Origin: Magallana gigas
Taxonomy: Eukaryota
NCBI RefSeq assembly: GCF_963853765.1
Contig: NC_088855.1
Location: 40,052,001-40,116,000, forward strand
Reading direction: 5' to 3'
Length of the DNA stretch: 64,000 bases
The notes below the pieces were generated by a model, which saw only the letters and a program-made list of their open reading frames with translations, did not search any database and was not told where the DNA came from. Below are positions 2,411-46,701 of the stretch, in pieces; position 1 is the stretch's first letter; every line of letters begins with the position of its first letter. Made by a program: the position numbers and the translations under genes.

Positions 2411-5400
2411 TTTAATATCCAACAAACCTACTAGCTGTTACAAATCATAGCACAACATAGCAAAGCATATAATTGCAAAGAATATTGGAAAAACGTGGCA
2501 CGGCACAACACAGTACGGATGAACTCCATTTTCGACGATTTGCCTTGGTCTCCTATTAAAGATTAACGTGTCTCGAAAAATTATTCAGGAACATTAGTCT
2601 AGGTGATATATTTTTTGGGAGGATGGATTATCTGGGGCACCGTCTTCTCTCCGTCATACGTACTTTTCGTTTAGCGCATATTCATAATCACTTGCTCTAG
2701 ATATTTCCCTAAATCTTTACACAAGGATGCGTATTGTACAGATTAATTCATTTAACCAATGGTTTTCATTTTGGCCAATCACTGAAACGTGATTTCAACA
2801 TTCCCAAAGGTACGTTTCACAAACTGTTAAAAATAGTTTTATCAAACATTGTTTACTGATATTAAATCGGCAAAACACAACTAACAAAAAGGTATTCCTT
2901 TATTCATCATGCTAACAACTCAGAATGGTGCGAAGAAACAAGGTGCCTCTTACTTCATCAGGTTGCAAAACGAATGTACCTTAAGCCGGGAATTCTTGTC
3001 CTGTGAATATCATTTTTGTTTTTGTTTGTTTTTGTAAATTGCATATTGTCTTTTATTTAAAAACCAATGATCATTGAGACATTGCTATTGATATAGATTA
3101 ACGATTCTTATTTTACACTTCGCAAGCATATTAGCTAATGCGCAATATAACGCTAAAACATCAGTTAGATCCTGTATGCTCGATTTTTTTCTTCTTATCA
3201 ATTTCATTGCATGTTATTACTTCATGTTAGTTTGGAATTAATGCGTGCAGGCACCTACGCTGGGTTTGCTATATTTGCGTCAACAGGTGTCTTGTGTCAG
3301 ATATTGATGCTGCAGAGATTCAATTAGCAAGCAATGTTCTCACCTTATACTTACAGGATGTTATAAGGAAAGAATTTCCATTCAGACATCAAATAGATAT
3401 TAATTAGGTATTTCAAGGATTCTTGTTTCTTCTCGAGACATTGACCCTTTTTTTTTTTAAAAAAAACTACACCGCAGTTTTAGGAGACAGAAAAGCTCCG
3501 GCTTTCAACCTTCTGTAGTTCGGTTCGAACTAGAAAACACCCTGAAAACACACGTCGGGATTTGTTCGAATTGTTCCCCAAGTAGCCGACGACAGCTTTA
3601 TGCATTTCTGATCACCCATGTCACCCACAACGCACTGTGAACGAAGCACTTGTTTTTATTTCATCGTCTATTTAAAGAATTAGACCGCTTGCTAGGATAA
3701 TACGCTGTCAATGGTTTTTTCTTCTCTTGAAGGAATATCGGATATCAATTAACTGTAATAACGCACATTTTAACTTTCCTACAATAATTTTACGACTGAG
3801 CTAATGAGGAAAAGTTGCAGTGTATGACGTACTTAGGGTAAATTTGTATCTCGAGGGGGCAGCGTTTTCATTGATACACGAGCGACCATATCTCCTGCTA
3901 AGATGTACCAAATCTTCCAAGAATGTACTTTGACAAGGTTAACGATTTTCAATGCTTGCCTACCATCATTAAAGGCTATTTTCATTTTTTTCATAATCAA
4001 GTCCGCAATAGCCTGATAGCATGATATATGTGTCAGATGGAAATTCTTTAGTAATAGTTTGATAAAAAAAACCTCGTATAATGTGTAAACATCATATTAG
4101 ATAAACAAAAAAGGTACTTTATGCCATAGTCTGTAGAAAAAAAGTCATAATATTTAAGTATCGACATATGATTTAAAGGGCGCAAGACTTTATCTATTAA
4201 AAAAAAATTAACACCCGCCCCGAAAAACTCCAATCCCCAAGAAAAACCCAAAGGAAAAAAAATAAATAAAAATAAATAGATATATAAATTAATTAATAAA
4301 ATTAAATACAACAACACCCCCCCCCCCCCAAAAAAAAAAGACAGCAAAAGGAAATAAAAAAAGAAAAAAAACCCAAACGCACAATCAGAATTACAACTTT
4401 CTCATTTTAATTATTCTGAAGAAATCTGGGATTAAAATAAAATTCCCCAAACACTTATTAGCCCAGTAACCTATATCCAACGGACTTACAAACTAAAGGT
4501 TCGATTATCTTAATCTCTCTCTGATCATATACAGTGTCTAAAATATACAAGTTATAGTAGAAAACAGTATATAAATTGTCTTAATGGAAAACCTTTCAAC
4601 CTAGGGACGTCTTACTTGATCATGATGGCGCTATTATAAATTTAACTCAGCTCTAACATCAAAGGAATTCAATGGGACAAAAAGCCTCTAAGCAAAGGCT
4701 CTCTATCTATAATTCTATCGTTGTATGCGGATAATGGAGGATGTCAAGAAGGTTATATTTCCATAAACCGGATATATTCAAAGATGCACCACCTTTTCAG
4801 ACTTGCCAATTTTGTGAAAAGTGGGACGGTGCCCAACAGAGAACAGATTACTTTGTATGGTATTTATACCATACAAAAGCGGGTATTTCTTTGATTGGAT
4901 TGGAATCTGAATCCCTATACAATATTACAGGCTGCTACAACTGAAGGAAGAATCTAGGACTTTGCCAGATCAATAGGATATATAATTCTTGTAGTTCGGA
5001 ACAGATTGCTGTGTCACTTTCATCATTGAGACGAAAATCGAGACGAACAAATCCCCACCAACCAAACTTAATTGATTTTATGGGGCATTACATGGCGAAT
5101 AGTTATCACTTTTACCGGTACATTTTTACTGAAGTAGATTGTACATGTACATGGCGGAAACACTACACTCTCAATTTGGTTATATATTTTTAAAACAAAA
5201 ACAATATAGTAAACAATCTTGATTTTGTTGTAAAATTTGTTACGTTAAAAAATACTTAAAGACCCTTTCTTACTTCTACGATTTGTGTTATCTTATTCGC
5301 TCATGCTCTTTATAAAGAATAATTGATGTTACAAAACGCAAGTAAGGTATTTTTCAATAATTTGATTCAAGACCTTGCATGTCGACAGTATGCGGAGTGG

Positions 5401-40091: not shown

Positions 40092-40163
40092 GCCGGAATA
40101 GCTCAGTTGGGAGAGCGTTAGACTGAAGATCTAAAGGCCCCCGGTTAATCCCGGGTTCCGGCA
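40092..40163 (+). pseudogene. tRNA-Phe copy 9 with C56 deleted (B-box lesion)
   Basis: T-loop reads CCGGTTAATCCC. Confidence 0.85.
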
Positions 40164-41138
40164 CGGAACACTCCGGCGGCTGATACATTTTTATCCTTTT
40201 GAATAATAGATGACCTCTTGGACTAAAAATTTGAGACCAAAATAAAAGATTGACATGGATACTGTAAATTATCATTGAGAATCTGAAGGAGAATCCAGAT
40301 GGTAAGCTCAACCATCGATTCAGATTTGGAAAGTTCAAATGTAGATCAGTTCTCAGCGTCATGACGATGCCAATATTGTTACTGAATAAATCGGCTGTGG
40401 ACAAGCTGTAATTGTAAGTAACTTTACAGTATGCCTTCAAATAGCTTGATGGCTCCAGCGTTGACTGAAATAGTAATAAACTGACGATCGTAAAACCTTA
40501 ACTCCAAGCAAATAAACTTCTTCAAGATATTTTATCGTTTTAATTAAATAAATTCAAAAGCCTATGAAAATTGCAGATACATGTACAGTTCTGAAAGACA
40601 GTTCTGTCATATCTTGACATAAAACACGATCTGATGAAAAACACGCAAATGAAATGTCAAAATGGACCCTTTTTCAGTTTGCTTGCATCGTTCATTAGGG
40701 TTACCAAAATGTGTTCCGTTTTGATTATCTAAAATAAAAATCCACAAGAACTTCTGGTGGCTCGGGATGGCATTCTAGATGTATTGTATGCCCGCTCTTG
40801 CTTTCAAAGGATCCAAATGGACTGTTACGCAGTTTGTTTTCTTTGCACATTTGCCTTATTTTTAATATGTTCCGTTTTCTTGATCTAGACGAAAGTGTCA
40901 ACCTCAAGTTTTCTCATTACATTTCAAAATGTTGAGAGTGTTTGACATGTTTTTCTTGTTTTTGTTCAAGTATAACGACACAAGGCAACTGTCTGGAAGC
41001 ATAAACATTATGATGGAAATACAGTCAATCATCGATCCAGATTATTGGTGAAACAATATCAGGTTATAGAATACATTTCTTGATCATTTGAAGTATTGGT
41101 TTTTCACCTGTTTTGATCCCGTTTCCAGGTGAGTATCA

Positions 41139-42187: not shown

Positions 42188-42245
42188 GCTGGAATAGCTC
42201 AGTTGGGAGATCGTTAGACTTAAGATCTAAAGGCCCCCGGTTCAA
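42188..42245 (+). pseudogene. tRNA-Phe copy 11, 5' part (nt 1-58), split by a 4.4-kb insertion
   Basis: GCTGGAATAGCTCAGTTGGGAGATCGTTAGACTTAAGATCTAAAGGCCCCCGGTTCAA followed by unrelated sequence; extra substitutions C3T, G24T and G34T. Confidence 0.93.
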
Positions 42246-42491
42246 AAGGTGGGGGCAGTTTCAGTTTCTGAATCTTCCAGAAATCAACAGTGCATCAGTC
42301 TTTAATTGATTATTATTTAAAGAATTTGCCACAAATCAATGCATAATTTTGACACATTAAACTTACATATAAGTATTTATAATTATTATTTGTTATTGCG
42401 ACATGTTATCACTTAAATTATCTAAAAAATTATACATTTTTGATATTAAATATAAATGTTTAAATGAATTATATCACTTTTGTCACTATTA

Positions 42492-42562
42492 TATACCCAC
42501 TAGGGTTCGAACCCGGATCTTTTGTCAAAAAGACAAGTATGCTTCTATTGCACCATGGGAAT
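42492..42562 (-). ncRNA. tRNA-Gln-like cloverleaf module inside the transposon
   Basis: ATTCCCA TG GTGC AATAGAA GCAT A CTTGT CTTTTTG ACAAA AGAT CCGGG TTCGAAC CCTAG TGGGTAT; A box TGGTGCAATAG, B box GGTTCGAACC; four stems with few mismatches. Confidence 0.6.
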
Positions 42563-42792
42563 TTTAAGTGACAGAAAGCAAAGTCCTAATTAGGCATTAT
42601 TAAAGATACCAAAAAACTTTCCCTCTGCTTTATGAGACATACAGTATTCTTACTATATGTCTCCAAGGGCTTCGACCTTCTAGTTAAGCAGTTAGCTAAA
42701 CTAGGCAGCATTAAAAGGTTTTTTTACAATGTTTTTTGGGGGGTTTTTTTTTGGGGGGGGGGGTCTTCAAATTTTGGTTTCGGTGAAGACTC

Positions 42793-45700
42793 TCACTTGT
42801 CATCTGAAGAGAGATCTTCTTTTGCAGTCTTCTCAACAGGCATGCAGGTCTTGTCTGCCTTCGCTTTCCTTTTGCCATATCCTTTTTCTCTCAACTCCTC
42901 TTCCAAGCATCATATGATATGGCAGTCTTTGAGGGACAGTAAATAATTCCAAACTACTGCTGATGACCTCCTCCTGACTTGTCCTCTCCACATTTACTAT
43001 AAGAAGTGACAAAGGCCTTTCGAACATAGGGTCTTGAAGTTGAAGTTCCCTTCCTCCACTGACTGCTGTTTCTTCTTCTGGTAGTGCTTGGTAGAGTATG
43101 GTATTAAGGGAACCTGAGATGGCACTGGGACTATTTTCACTGGAGGAATGTTGTTGATTGGCACGGGTTGGACAAACACTGGTTGCTCTGGAAAAATCCT
43201 CCGTCTTCCTTTGGTGCCTTGTCCAACAGTGGATAGATTCACTGTGAATCCATGGGGGTCTGGTGTTCCAGTCTCTAAGGCCTTTGGTTTTAGCATTGGA
43301 AGGGGTAGTGACTGGGCCGCAACAGACGTTAATAAATTCCTTAATAAATCCCTTACAAGTTTGGTTGATTGATATCGCTAATTTTCACACAGGGTCCTAA
43401 TAAATCCCTTACAAGTCTGGTTGATTGATGTCGCTAATTTTCACACATGAGCTGGGCCTGGGGGGATCGTACCACAGGTGGTCTATTTTCCTGTCATCCA
43501 GCTCAGGCTTACCCTTGGCATTGAAAGAGAACAGAGCCTTAGATATCCAAGGAATGTCCTCTGGAGGCAGACATGATTTCCAGCTATCTATGATAGGATA
43601 CTCTCTAAAAAAGGATAAATAATGCAAATGAAAAAAGGCAACTCACCCAGTCACAGGCAATATCATCTTAAAAATTTCATTAATTCTCATTCTAGTTTAA
43701 AAAATTACCATATATAACTGGTTGAAGGTTCAGAGTCTGCGTTTGTGGTGTAGCTGTCACTGATGAAGTCGATGACGAAGCTGATGGTAGCCTTGTTGAC
43801 GTAGCCGGTGGTGGCAGTGTCACTGAGGTAGCGGATGGTGGCAGAGTAACTGACGAAGCTGGTAGTGGCAGTGTCACTGACAGAGTTGGAGTTGGAGGTA
43901 ACACTGATGGAGTCGGAGTCGGAGAGAGGCGACACTGACGGACTCACTGGTGGAGGTGACACTGACATACTCACTGGTGGAGGCGACAAGGACGGAGTCA
44001 CTGGTGGAAGCAACACTGACAGACTCGCTGGTGGAGGCGACATTGACGGAGTCACTGGTGGAAGCAACTCTGAAGGAGTCACTGGTTGGGGTGACATTGA
44101 CGAAGTCTCTAGAAGAGGCGACACTGACGGAGGCAACATTGACGGACTCACTGACGGAGGCAACACTGACGGAGTCACTGTAGGAGATTACGATGATAAT
44201 CCAGAACTCACTGAGATCTATGAAGCTTCCACAACTACCACTGCAACAGGATGCAAAATCAAAGTAATTGTTTGAAGATCATACTATATGGTATTAAATA
44301 AAAGAGCTTTATTTTCAGTTGTGTCGTGTACTTACCATTTTTTGTTGGTTTACTTGGCTTGGCTGATCTTTGTCGACTCGGAGCCAAGGTGTCCTTTGCC
44401 GTCAGAAGATGGGGGCGGGTCTTCTGAGGGCTTTTGACATTGCGAAGATCTGAAAGGAAAACAAGTAGTGTAAATAAATGAGCTTATCTAAAACAATATA
44501 TGCGATCGAAGAGAAATATCAGTTTCGCTTACTGACCTTTCTGTCGAGGAGGCACTGTTGAAAGAGGCTTGGTCTAGCTTGGCGATCTTGTCGGTGCAGA
44601 GGATTCTACAATGCATTACATTGCAATCAATCACAAGTTTTATTTTCTGTTAATCAACTATACCAAATTTAATTCACCGAAAAAAGTCAAAAATGATATT
44701 TTTATACTCCACGCCACACCTCTGACTAATTACACTTACCATAATTTGCTGAAGTCTATATAGAGCTAATACGGAAGTTTAACACAATATATATAATTTA
44801 CTATTTATATGAAACTAAAAGAGGACACAATATCAGTTACTTTTTAATTTATATATAGATATTGATATGAAATTATGCTTTATGAAAAATCAATTGATTC
44901 ATTTAAATTTAAAAGCTTTGTTTTTATATACTTTAAACAAATCTTACAGTGTTTATAGATAGACTTATTTGACGAATAAAACTGAAGAATTGAATAAAAA
45001 TTAAAAAATTACCTTTCAACAGATTGCTTTCTATTTTTTCTACTTCTCCTTATAACGCAATATCTGAAAAATCATCCACAGACATCTTCCTTGGACTCAG
45101 TATGTTTGGTTTAACAACCGGCCGAGATCTGGCAGCTTCCTCATGCTGTACTTTTCTTGCCTCCGCAGCAGGAAGATGTGAAAATAAGAACTCTGGTGTT
45201 AAAGGAGGCCTTTTCTTTTCCTCTTCTTTCACTTCGCTGCTGCTTTTTCAATTTGACAACTTCTCGACCCAGGATATTAAATCAATTTTAGACATAGTAA
45301 CCTATTAATTATCAAGTAACATCAAGTTTAATGAATTTTTAATTTTATGATTCAAATATTAAGAAGAATGAAAACTTCTATATTTATCGTTTGTTATTAG
45401 TATATTTACGACATGATTATATATATGTTACCGACGTTTTGTTTAATTTATCACAAATGAATATATAAGGCATTACTTACCTTCAGGGAAAGAGAGTAGG
45501 TAATCCTTAAACGCATGCTTGTTCTCTCTCTCCTCATTGCATCCCTAAGCCAGCCCGCATAACTGAGGCAGTTTTCCACCATCCATAAAAATGTCTGACC
45601 CTGATATTTACCAAATTAGGTTGGGATTTGTCCATGAAGAATTTGGAAATTCTTCGGATCACCATTTTTGGATTTTACAGCCCTAACTGCTTGGCTTTGA

Positions 45701-45815
45701 CTTGTGACGGCTGCTCACATAATCCCGGCATAGACTTGACTAGGCCTTTCTCTGCCTCTTCCCTCCCGTACAACAGGAGGTCTCCATTTCTTGTTCGCCG
45801 GAAATGAGACAACAT
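42793..45815 (-). pseudogene. Multi-exon transposase-like pseudogene (DUF6729/Dada-type N- and C-terminal regions; catalytic core missing)
   Basis: GT-AG exons at ~45481-45816 (MLSHFRRTRNG...GDPKNFQILHGQIP*FGKYQGQTFLWMVENCLSYAGWL), ~45013-45270, ~44538-44607, ~44336-44450, ~43709-44240 (Pro/Ser/Thr repeats) and 43604 downward (WKSCLPPEDIPWISKALF...GKPEL...LWYDPPRP, then a junction, then C-terminal KCGEDK...GH...FG..YCP...YDAWK); stops and frameshifts present. Confidence 0.7.
43342..43447. repeat. Two 50-bp direct repeats at the internal deletion junction of the transposase
   Basis: 43342-43391 and 43398-43447, 2 mismatches, 6-bp spacer GGGTCC. Confidence 0.9.
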
Positions 45816-46686
45816 GCTGTAGATTTGGTGGATGATCAAACAAAATTGGATGAAAGTTAAGGCTATCAAAAGTCTTGCTGCATGAATGTGAATCTCAATA
45901 ATGTTGTTCTTAGAATATTTACATTGTGCCTCACTCTTAATTAATATAATAAAGATAATTTTGATACTCATATCACCTGTTACAAAGGTGTGCAAAACAG
46001 TTGGATATTTACATGAATTAATTACAGATGCAAGATGTAAATTCAAAATATTTCCAAAGCACGTGGTACTGATTATAAACACGGTCTTATCTACCTATGT
46101 TCGTCTCTTATTATACACCACGGAGAGTTGAAAAGTCATAAATTAAAGTTGCTGAAAAAGGTGTATGAGGATGAGGGGGTCAGGTCATGTTGTTGATAAA
46201 TACCGGCTAAAACCCATTAAGATAAGCGTGAAAACCTAATAAGATAATAACATTAAGTTACAAGCATTCATTCATATATGCCAATAATTAATTATGCGCA
46301 GTTAATTGCTAGAAAAAGCGATTGAACTTAAATAGGTCATGTCGTACATCAAAGCAGAGAAAAGGGGGGGGGTGTAATAAAATGGCTACTTACATGTTTT
46401 TGTTCCTTTGTATGTCCAAACAATCACTTGCACGGAAACAAATCCACTAAAAGCTATACAATCTAGGCGATCACTAACTTAAATATCACTATTTTCATAC
46501 ACGATTTTCACAAAACCACTATATTGACAACCGGTAAATATCACATCCAATATGGCGGAATAATCAGGGGCAGATAACTCCAATATTTACTCTCCTCGGC
46601 AGCAGCATCTCATTGGTCAATTTATGATTGATTTGTGGTAGATTTGCCATGGAACTGAGGTCACTGATTGGCTGGCTGGAGTGCAA

Positions 46687-46701
46687 TCCCGGGTTCCGGC
46701 A
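46687..46701 (+). pseudogene. tRNA-Phe copy 11, 3' part (nt 59-73)
   Basis: TCCCGGGTTCCGGCA followed by the standard trailer CGGAACACTCCGGCGGCTGATACATTTTT. Confidence 0.93.

Follow-up and report, generated by a model that had tools for sequence, protein, structure and literature searches.

Self-cleaving ribozymes in the mobile DNA of eukaryotes are tied to retroelements, namely R2 and other LINEs, Penelope-like elements and retrozymes. The twister ribozymes cut themselves near their 5′ edge and, to our knowledge, their roles in eukaryotes are largely open. tRNA-like folds are used as 3′-end processing signals in Pol II transcripts, as in the mascRNA of MALAT1 and the MEN-beta tRNA-like sequence, and RNase P and RNase Z recognize the fold formed by the acceptor and T arms. 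The schistosome Sm-alpha is a SINE-like repeat that bears a ribozyme. The Dada superfamily comprises DNA transposons with multicopy small-RNA genes as their targets (Kojima & Jurka 2013, PMC3706591; Kojima 2022, PMC8869645). Most of the known targets are Pol III genes, the transposases carry a C-terminal CCHC finger of the form C-x2-C-x9-H-x8-C, altered target-site duplications are on record for Dada-tA, and the published site of Dada-U6 is position 70 of U6, after GCGCAA (PMC3706591). In the accessible parts of both papers, the tRNA sites of fish Dada lie in the anticodon arm or the A box, with a single tRNA-Phe case at TAGCTC (PMC3706591, PMC8869645). Dada elements are reported as 40-fold enriched in the class 1 piRNA clusters of oyster (PMC6128900), and some RTE retrotransposons reportedly bear a twister at the 5′ end (PMC7761336).

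The window, the whole stretch of 64,000 nucleotides of oyster DNA that was analyzed, contains a tandem tRNA-Phe(GAA) array with a unit of 1045 bp, which spans 27-48 kb. The array is interrupted twice, by a DIRS-like retroelement of 4.7 kb (32406-37116) and by a Dada insertion of 4.4 kb (42246-46680), the borders of which were set by comparing both junctions with the intact array unit. On the left, the 5′ part of a tRNA-Phe gene (42188-42245, plus strand), whose anticodon is mutated to TAA, runs to the T-loop and closes with the hexamer GTTCAA (42240-42245); the array unit matches to 42242-42245. On the right, GTGCAA (46681-46686) is followed by the 3′ part of the gene (together 46681-46701, plus strand), and the array unit resumes at 46685. 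The two hexamers are a 6-bp target-site duplication, identical at five of six positions. The tRNA-Phe is split at tRNA position 55-58, in the T-loop, and the array unit picks up exactly afterwards. A related remnant elsewhere adjoins the same tRNA-Phe site, CAAT(T)CCCGGG.

The insertion, recognized by its junctions and its gene remnants, is a Dada-type DNA transposon of the first of four lineages considered here (A to D). It is internally deleted and decayed, and its gene remnants lie on the minus strand, where the order from 5′ to 3′ is a CCAAT module, an exon with the motif FGKYQGQTF, a Ser/Pro-rich repeat, a DUF6729 exon, the 56-bp repeats and the C-terminal exon. The exons were searched one by one. 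The 5′-terminal module (46534-46680) contains CCAAT-box-like motifs and may represent the promoter; a solo remnant, 74% identical to this module, adjoins a tRNA-Phe 3′ remnant on the same chromosome. The FGKYQGQTF exon (45454-45615) gives a weak ExoX-like_C match (E 0.35) and has a counterpart in the N-terminal part of the amphioxus Dada-U6 protein. An exon fragment at 43412-43642 holds positions 1-45 of DUF6729 (Pfam PF20499, E 4.7e-7), the remainder of the domain being missing, and a Pfam search of all open frames of the element gave nothing significant besides this fragment. Two copies of the 56-bp repeat, which is foreign to the element and frequent elsewhere in the genome, sit at the internal deletion junction (43342-43447, no strand assigned). 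The C-terminal exon remnant with the CCHC zinc-finger region (42836-43384) was compared with a copy on chromosome 1, from which it differs by a 4-bp insertion, a Cys-to-Tyr change at the first cysteine of the finger and a premature stop that follows the histidine.

Beyond the coding remnants, and on the same minus strand, are a twister-P1-like ribozyme with a damaged core (42617-42717), a non-conserved spacer of 54 nt (42563-42616; 67-220 nt in other copies), a tRNA-like cloverleaf of 71 nt (42492-42562) and an AT-rich trailer (42246-42491) that leads to the 3′ terminus of the element. This terminus reads ...CCTT on the gene strand, and those of lineages C and D read ...CCT. A block of 946 bp (42383-43328) has an 88% identical copy on chromosome 1, the sister copy of lineage A, and a shorter piece has a third copy; the trailer part at 42383-42491 is 90% identical to the chromosome-1 copy. 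The whole 4.4-kb element was also considered as a multi-copy repeat and rejected as such, for only parts of it recur in the genome.

A DDE transposase with the C/DxxH motif is not present in the window copy, whose catalytic part is deleted. Genome searches with DUF6729 and with the C-terminal block place the former 4-6 kb upstream of the latter, in one gene, in several intact-looking oyster paralogues, and both occur in full-length proteins of a goby (1231 aa) and of GCA_001625305.1 (1340 aa), which we take to be an amphioxus assembly. A finger of the form C-x2-C-x8-H-x8-C is found at the C-terminus in lineages A (chromosome-1 copy), B, C and D. Lineage C lies in a U1-U6 tandem array, where it adjoins a U6 gene interrupted behind GCGCAA (position 70); its transposase and U6 are on opposite strands. 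The amphioxus relative adjoins U6 at the same site and carries the published subterminal motif TCTTCTCTG. Given the insertion at a fixed site, the 6-bp duplication, the combination of DUF6729 with the CCHC block and the position of lineage C at the Dada-U6 site, the family of the window element is Dada, and the element is a member that targets the T-loop of tRNA-Phe. The window copy is a dead relic, because DUF6729 and the catalytic part are deleted and the C-terminal exon is frameshifted. Its twister and cloverleaf are also damaged, in the ribozyme core and in three cloverleaf pairs.

The first-pass annotation had described a cloverleaf with an A box, a B box and four stems near the element end, on the transposase strand and downstream of the transposase, and had likened it to tRNA-Gln. 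The description holds. The four-arm fold at 42492-42562 lies 246 bp inside the left end of the element, and the mapping of the gene remnants places it on their strand and downstream of them. It consists of the acceptor stem ATTCCCA/TGGGTAT (six of seven pairs), the D stem GTGC/GCAT, the anticodon stem CTTGT/ACAAA (four of five pairs) with the loop CTTTTTG, of which the center is TTT, and the T stem CCGGG/CCTAG with the T-loop TTCGAAC inside the palindrome GGGTTCGAACCC; the acceptor, anticodon and T stems have one mismatch each. ARAGORN calls a tRNA-Lys(TTT), the Rfam tRNA model (RF00005, gathering score 29) gives 38.7 bits with an E value of 1.3e-4 over the whole 64-kb window, and R1, a covariance model of the cloverleaf, gives 79.5 bits. 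In a canonical tRNA the anticodon loop has 7 nt, a purine at position 37 and a conserved anticodon. The window loop, CUUUUUG, has 7 nt and U at position 37, and the loops of lineages B, C and D have 8, 9 and 6 nt and unrelated sequences. Since the loop varies in length (6-9 nt) and in sequence, decoding is not the function of the cloverleaf.

Among the genuine tRNA genes that were fetched, those that score best with R1 are tRNA-Gln(TTG) and tRNA-Gln(CTG), at 58-61 bits, in agreement with the proposed likeness. The window module is 58-60% identical to tRNA-Gln genes, and the lineages overall are 52-61% identical to oyster tRNA-Gln. Two traits derived with respect to tRNA-Gln are common to all lineages, ACTT after the D arm and an A/U-rich anticodon stem, and the D-loop is one base shorter than that of tRNA-Gln in A, B and C. 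Given these shared derived traits and the constant ribozyme neighbor, the simplest history is that an ancestral bivalve Dada captured a tRNA-Gln-like sequence once. The cloverleaf was also considered as a copy of the target gene. This was rejected: the target is tRNA-Phe, the module is tRNA-Gln-like, and R1 has no match to the window tRNA-Phe at E values up to 1.

The twister of the window is matched by RF03160 at 31.9 bits (E 7e-5, in a focused 758-nt search). It keeps the core UAAUGCUGCC ... GGUC ... UAAAGCAGAGGG and has an extra hairpin at the position of an optional stem. The core lesion consists of a change of the consensus GGUCCCAAGCCC to GGUCGAAGCCC, with CC replaced by G in GGUCCC; in the chromosome-1 sister, GAGGG reads GAGAG. 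Their common ancestor had a consensus twister core, and the decay of both copies is neutral. In lineages B, C and D the core is intact except for one possibly compensating pair, and the P1, P2 and P4 helices are present. These three lineages share a GGUC-to-GGUU and a GAGGG-to-GAGGA change, which would involve pseudoknot partners and may compensate each other. The P3 helix covaries, with CUAAUGCA in B and C, CUACUAUAU in D and CUAGUU in A. All the scores are below the RF03160 gathering score of 67.2, with 30.1-31.9 bits in A and 54.8-61.7 bits in B, C and D, where the E values are about 1e-10 to 1e-12. An A-run upstream and a U-run downstream flank every twister, and their pairing would extend helix P1. 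The A-run was also regarded as an encoded poly(A) tail, a reading that was set aside in favor of the simpler extension of P1 by pairing with the U-run. The Dada twisters have a common core and are distinct in sequence from the LINE-type twisters of the same genome; these other oyster twisters open LINE-like repeats and are immediately preceded by poly(A) tracts.

The twister followed by the cloverleaf, on the same strand and 3′ of the transposase stop, is found in all four Dada lineages. In the window copy of lineage A, at the T-loop of tRNA-Phe, the twister (31.9 bits) and the cloverleaf (38.7 bits) are 54 nt apart. The chromosome-1 sister has a twister of 30.1 bits 57 nt from the stop codon, followed after 67 nt by a cloverleaf of 48.5 bits. 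Lineage B, with five copies in the oyster that are 97-100% identical, has twisters of 55.6-61.7 bits and a cloverleaf of 54.2 bits, with 880 nt from stop to twister and 91 nt from twister to cloverleaf. In lineage C, the oyster Dada-U6, the scores are 59.5 and 53.3 bits and the distances 139 and 220 nt. Lineage D, from the scallop Ylistrum balloti, has its terminus at the A box (TAGCG) of a tRNA-Arg(TCT) gene. The twister of this lineage (54.8 bits) begins about 1300 nt from the stop codon and the cloverleaf follows after 122 nt (L067 6406-6479); this cloverleaf is homologous, gets no Rfam call because of its weak T stem, and scores 77 bits with R1, a model in whose building the lineage D sequence was included.

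The hosts of the cassette belong to two bivalve orders, and the cassette appears, from these sequences, to be carried by a bivalve Dada clade whatever the small-RNA gene that is targeted. Neither twister nor cloverleaf was found in the 3′ regions of the goby element, which lies in a tRNA-Met array, of two fish-like elements or of the amphioxus Dada-U6; the two further elements look fish-derived, since they contain UnaL2 LINE 3′ elements. The cassette is apparently dispensable for the Dada elements of goby, other fish and amphioxus, a point that counts against the RNA mechanism discussed below. The oyster paralogues that lack the cassette are truncated within 40-180 nt of the stop codon or inside the coding part (L053, L057, L044) or have a 685-bp deletion (L052). 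A deletion removed the cassette from one copy of lineage B.

The search of the 564-Mb genome with R1 gives eight copies of the cloverleaf, at 79-87 bits and all in Dada 3′ regions: five in lineage B, one in lineage C, the window copy and the chromosome-1 sister. About 20 bits separate them from the next matches, which are genuine tRNA genes. A DNA search with the cloverleaf gives two copies. The module was therefore rejected as the head of a tRNA-derived SINE, given two copies by DNA search, eight by R1 and no dispersed ones.

In the sequence 3′ of the stop codon, just two segments can be aligned among lineages B, C and D, the twister (75-95% identity) and the cloverleaf (77-85%), and lineage A aligns with the other three at the 5′ core of the twister alone. 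The protein block beside the cassette is 37-40% identical between lineages. The cloverleaf stems pair in 93% of the cells, compared with 44-51% (about 47%) when the partners are slid by 1-3 columns. Compensatory double changes are seen at 11 of the 21 pairs, distributed over the acceptor stem (five of seven), the D stem (two of four), the anticodon stem (two of five) and the T stem (two of five). The covariation score was reached by none of 500 shuffles, for an alignment of five distinct cloverleaves from four lineages that amounts effectively to three or four independent contrasts (an earlier version had four sequences); the signal is nevertheless consistent in each of the helices. Since the acceptor and anticodon stems are under selection, what is kept is the RNA fold, beyond the A and B boxes of the DNA. 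Two further suggestions of the first-pass annotation gain from these results. The hint of selection on the fold is borne out by the pairing of 93% against about 47% and by compensation that includes five of the seven acceptor pairs, which an A/B-box role in the DNA does not require. The view of the module as integral, instead of a SINE inserted by chance, agrees with its presence in the other lineages and with the eight genomic copies, all in Dada. The module is, in all probability, an integral and selected part of the bivalve Dada elements.

The same data bear on two simpler explanations. One holds that the module arose by chance or is a decayed tRNA pseudogene of the ordinary kind, without relation to the element. 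The modest score of the window cloverleaf (38.7 bits) and its three mismatched pairs would fit such an origin, as would the comparison within lineage A, in which the two copies have diverged alike and the cloverleaf (89% identity) is no better conserved than the flanks (90%); the twister is at 93%. The sister cloverleaf on chromosome 1 is better preserved, with all T-stem and anticodon-stem pairs intact and A at position 38. However, homologous modules occupy the corresponding place in all four lineages, across two bivalve orders, which makes this explanation scarcely credible. The other is a neutral passenger, a retroelement fragment, for instance the 5′ twister of a LINE plus a tRNA-derived SINE head, which landed once in the 3′ region of an ancestral Dada. 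Molluscs are rich in tRNA-derived SINEs. Other oyster repeats begin with a twister placed immediately behind a poly(A) tract, twisters are also on record for RTE 5′ ends (PMC7761336), and the cassette could be deleted from one lineage B copy. On the other hand, the modules are islands of similarity in DNA that is otherwise unalignable, beside a protein block of 37-40% identity, their stems covary, the Dada twisters share a core that differs from the LINE-type twisters, and the genome search with R1 found no free cloverleaf copies outside Dada. A neutral passenger is accordingly very improbable.

The promoter elements raise another possibility, close to an idea of the first-pass annotation, of a module that acts at the DNA level through Pol III or TFIIIC. 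The A and B boxes would bind TFIIIC, and this would drive a small Pol III transcript, serve the transposase gene as a chromatin boundary, or keep the element close to Pol III clusters and thereby assist it in reaching tRNA or U6 targets; the twister would be a separate neighbor. The B box is perfect in the window (GGTTCGAACC) and B-box-like sequences are found in B, C and D (GTTCAAATC, GTTCAAGTC, TTCAAAC), as is an A-box-like TAGTTCAAnGG; the T-loop and the D-arm are the most invariant parts of the cloverleaf, and the known Dada targets are mostly Pol III genes (PMC3706591). The intact A and B boxes likewise speak against a reading in terms of RNA only. However, double changes at 7 of the 12 pairs preserve the pairing of the acceptor and anticodon stems, which promoter boxes would not require. 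No Pol III terminator is found near the 3′ end of the cloverleaf in any lineage, where the first run of at least four T lies 58-88 nt downstream, unlike in true tRNA genes. The linkage to a ribozyme, which is able to act in RNA only, is constant in strand and order, and fish and amphioxus Dada reach the same kinds of target without the module. A role confined to DNA is thus rather unlikely. The constant presence of the twister 54-220 nt upstream points instead to a role at the level of RNA.

RNA was mapped on lineage B only, with the contigs of two libraries and the raw reads of two more, of which about 1 in 100 reads was sampled. Coverage begins at a splice acceptor (L047 1379), takes in the last exon and the 3′ UTR and ends at ~2625-2643, with AATAAA at 2620, so that the lineage B cassette lies ~200 nt past the poly(A) site of the message. 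At this low depth neither the twister (2836-2911) nor the cloverleaf (3003-3074), some 200-430 nt beyond, is covered, and standard libraries lose structured RNAs of 70 nt. A stable 240-nt RNA from ribozyme to cloverleaf should have shown in the random-primed run. The missing cover fits an unstable by-product, a small stable RNA or no transcription alike. Between the stop codon and the ribozyme, lineages A and C have no canonical poly(A) signal; AATAAA occurs 21-40 nt after the cloverleaf in B and C. Beyond the 3′ end of the element begins the host array, which is antisense to the transposase gene in the window and in Dada-U6.

An RNA-processing and termination cassette is favored, because both modules get RNA cut and because they stand in fixed order, on the sense strand, between the message and the 3′ end of the element. 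We infer the following course. Sense transcription would run past the transposase reading frame, or past its poly(A) site, into the cassette. The ribozyme would cut the transcript near its own 5′ edge, and the host RNase P and RNase Z would cut at the cloverleaf. By this double cutting, the transposase transcript would have its 3′ end defined or secured, read-through into the flanking tRNA or snRNA gene array would be stopped, and the small tRNA-shaped RNA would be released as a by-product, or possibly as the point of the process. The securing of the 3′ end is hard to reconcile with lineages A and C, where an efficient ribozyme would remove the tail of the message. As the best explanation of the whole, an integral bivalve Dada cassette that acts in RNA has a somewhat better than even chance of being right; the more specific cis-acting mechanism of processing and termination, set over its rivals, has about an even one.

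The released product may itself be the function. A tRNA-shaped RNA of ~72 nt could act in trans, for instance as a cofactor or regulator of the transposase or as a decoy for small-RNA defence; the 5′-OH left by the ribozyme would shield the downstream RNA from 5′-3′ decay after cleavage at the poly(A) site, and RNase P and RNase Z would release the product. All four arms are kept, beyond the acceptor-T minihelix that RNase P and RNase Z need, the length of the anticodon loop changes freely between lineages (7, 8, 9 and 6 nt), which is what a non-decoding RNA would show, and the enrichment of Dada in piRNA clusters makes small-RNA pressure plausible (PMC6128900). Against this stand the lineage B data, in which no RNA of the module was seen (though standard libraries lose such RNAs), the lack of a conserved single-stranded segment for specificity, the non-conserved spacer, and the fact that no trans target is known. 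Such a function is unlikely.

The first-pass annotation had also connected the module with the target, by restoring a B box to the disrupted locus or by a small RNA linked to targeting. The restoration is unlikely, because the module also serves an element that targets U6, a non-tRNA gene, and lies far from the junction (250-1000 bp); moreover, both in the window and in Dada-U6 its strand is opposite to that of the target gene. A link with the targeting of tRNA genes in particular is not supported, given that the oyster Dada-U6 carries the same module. A broader version would be a unit for small-RNA production whose tRNA-shaped product, or TFIIIC bound to its DNA, together with the Dada transposase, guides the element to Pol III and snRNA clusters or licenses integration. 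This version is improbable; if true, it would amount to a nucleic-acid-assisted choice of site by a eukaryotic DDE transposon.

The Dada elements and their site specificity, the oyster Dada-U6, the twister class and the twisters at RTE 5′ ends are already published. In the searchable open-access literature, no link of Dada to a twister or to an internal tRNA-like sequence was found. The new elements are the cloverleaf as the constant partner of the twister, its covariation, its tRNA-Gln origin, the scallop case and the apparent absence from the examined fish and amphioxus elements. A twister and a tRNA-shaped fold form a conserved, covarying cassette in a family of cut-and-paste DNA transposons that resides inside tRNA and snRNA arrays. 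If confirmed, the cassette would give twisters a defined eukaryotic context, provide a natural counterpart of the ribozyme/tRNA processing cassettes of genome engineering, and offer a handle on how the Pol II gene of Dada can be expressed amid Pol III arrays that stay undisturbed.

Compared with the described Dada (PMC3706591, PMC8869645), the oyster and scallop elements share the single fixed site inside tRNA, U6 or U1 genes, the 6-7-bp duplication without long terminal inverted repeats, the intron-containing transposase with a C-terminal CCHC finger and, for the oyster Dada-U6, the insertion behind GCGCAA at U6 position 70, the transposase and U6 being on opposite strands. The window element differs in its T-loop site of tRNA-Phe, which is not among the sites found described in the accessible parts of these papers, and the elements in general differ in the internal tRNA-like sequence and ribozyme, neither of which is mentioned there (PMC3706591, PMC8869645); the window copy differs also by its missing catalytic region. 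With respect to the RTE twisters, the Dada twister is located in the 3′ region of a DNA transposon and not at the 5′ end of a retroelement (PMC7761336).

The type-P1 twister (RF03160) and the Dada ribozymes have in common the core UAA-GC-GCC ... GGU(C/U)CCAAGCCC ... AAA-GC-GAGG and the P1, P2, P3 and P4 helices with variable optional stems. The Dada versions differ by scores below the gathering score, by the C-to-U change in GGUC and the G-to-A change in GAGGG in B, C and D, and by the cloverleaf that always follows. With tRNA-derived SINEs and Sm-alpha, Dada shares a tRNA-derived sequence with A and B boxes linked, in a repeat, to a small self-cleaving ribozyme. However, the Dada cassette is not dispersed, its eight copies being all inside Dada, it has neither a tail nor signs of retroposition, the order is ribozyme and then tRNA-like sequence, and the ribozyme is a twister instead of a hammerhead. 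With mascRNA and MEN-beta, it has in common that a cloverleaf without decoding function lies 3′ of a long Pol II transcript and keeps intact the acceptor and T arms, at which RNase P and RNase Z could cut. In Dada, where no upstream triple-helix stabilizer was identified, this cloverleaf is paired with a ribozyme and is carried in a mobile element.

The tRNA-Phe array of the window has been entered by two mobile elements and its genes are not uniform. The 5' part of the copy interrupted by the decayed Dada-tF element (42246-46680, minus strand) lies at 42188-42245 and carries the anticodon TAA instead of GAA. The array copy at 40092-40164 has a T-loop one base short (GGTTAATCC) and a length of 72 nt. 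The second insertion is a DIRS-like retroelement of 4.7 kb (32406-37116), placed downstream of a tRNA-Phe gene at a distance of about 80 bp. Its first ORF (894 aa) combines a zinc knuckle with a reverse transcriptase, weakly matches a Dam-like methyltransferase as well, and is followed by a second ORF of 326 aa encoding a tyrosine recombinase.

Where the Dada element has suffered its internal deletion, the junction holds a 56-bp unit in two copies (43342-43447). A 55-bp word of this unit recurs at dozens of genomic sites with 100% identity, some of those on C6 being spaced by about 3.6 kb, and the unit is probably a piece of another repeat family.

The 5' end of Dada-tF also survives as a solo remnant, 74% identical, at C3:14666950-14667270 of the oyster genome (locus L025, 1400-1720). 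The remnant adjoins a degenerate 3' part of tRNA-Phe (CAATTCCCGGG), and its terminal 40 nt are repeated after it in inverted orientation. Within this terminal stretch, TTAGACTGAAGA is identical to the tRNA-Phe anticodon arm.

The oyster Dada-U6 element resides in a different array. At C4:18997000-19002900, the U1 and U6 snRNA genes form a perfect tandem array of 2103-bp units that are 100% identical, and the final U6 is interrupted at position 70 by Dada-U6. Several more Dada fragments are found at C4:19.00-19.09 Mb.

Exonuclease domains are reported in the Dada elements of fungi and of a brown alga. An open frame on the minus strand (L035 6669-7214; C1:29409668-29410213), upstream of the sister that the window's C-terminal block has on chromosome 1, shows a DEDD-type exonuclease-like motif (GHNIKRLD...) and is a candidate part of the element.

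The cassette of twister-P1-like ribozyme and tRNA-like cloverleaf is not carried by every Dada copy. A lineage B copy (C1:10635277-10638708), 94% identical, has lost precisely the twister and cloverleaf stretch through a 685-bp deletion. A tRNA-Met(CAT) array of the goby Mugilogobius chulae (GCA_016735935.1) harbours a full-length DUF6729 (Dada) gene. Some 940 bp past the gene the array picks up again, from about tRNA position 7; neither twister nor cloverleaf was found in this interval.

Compact twister-P1 matches (45-56 bits) occur outside Dada, at C1:59928975, C10:20849877 and C5:39317479. Their sequences are unrelated to those of the Dada twisters, and they are positioned immediately 3' of long poly(A) tracts, where LINE-like sequence begins. 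This placement is consistent with the twisters mentioned at RTE 5' ends (PMC7761336).
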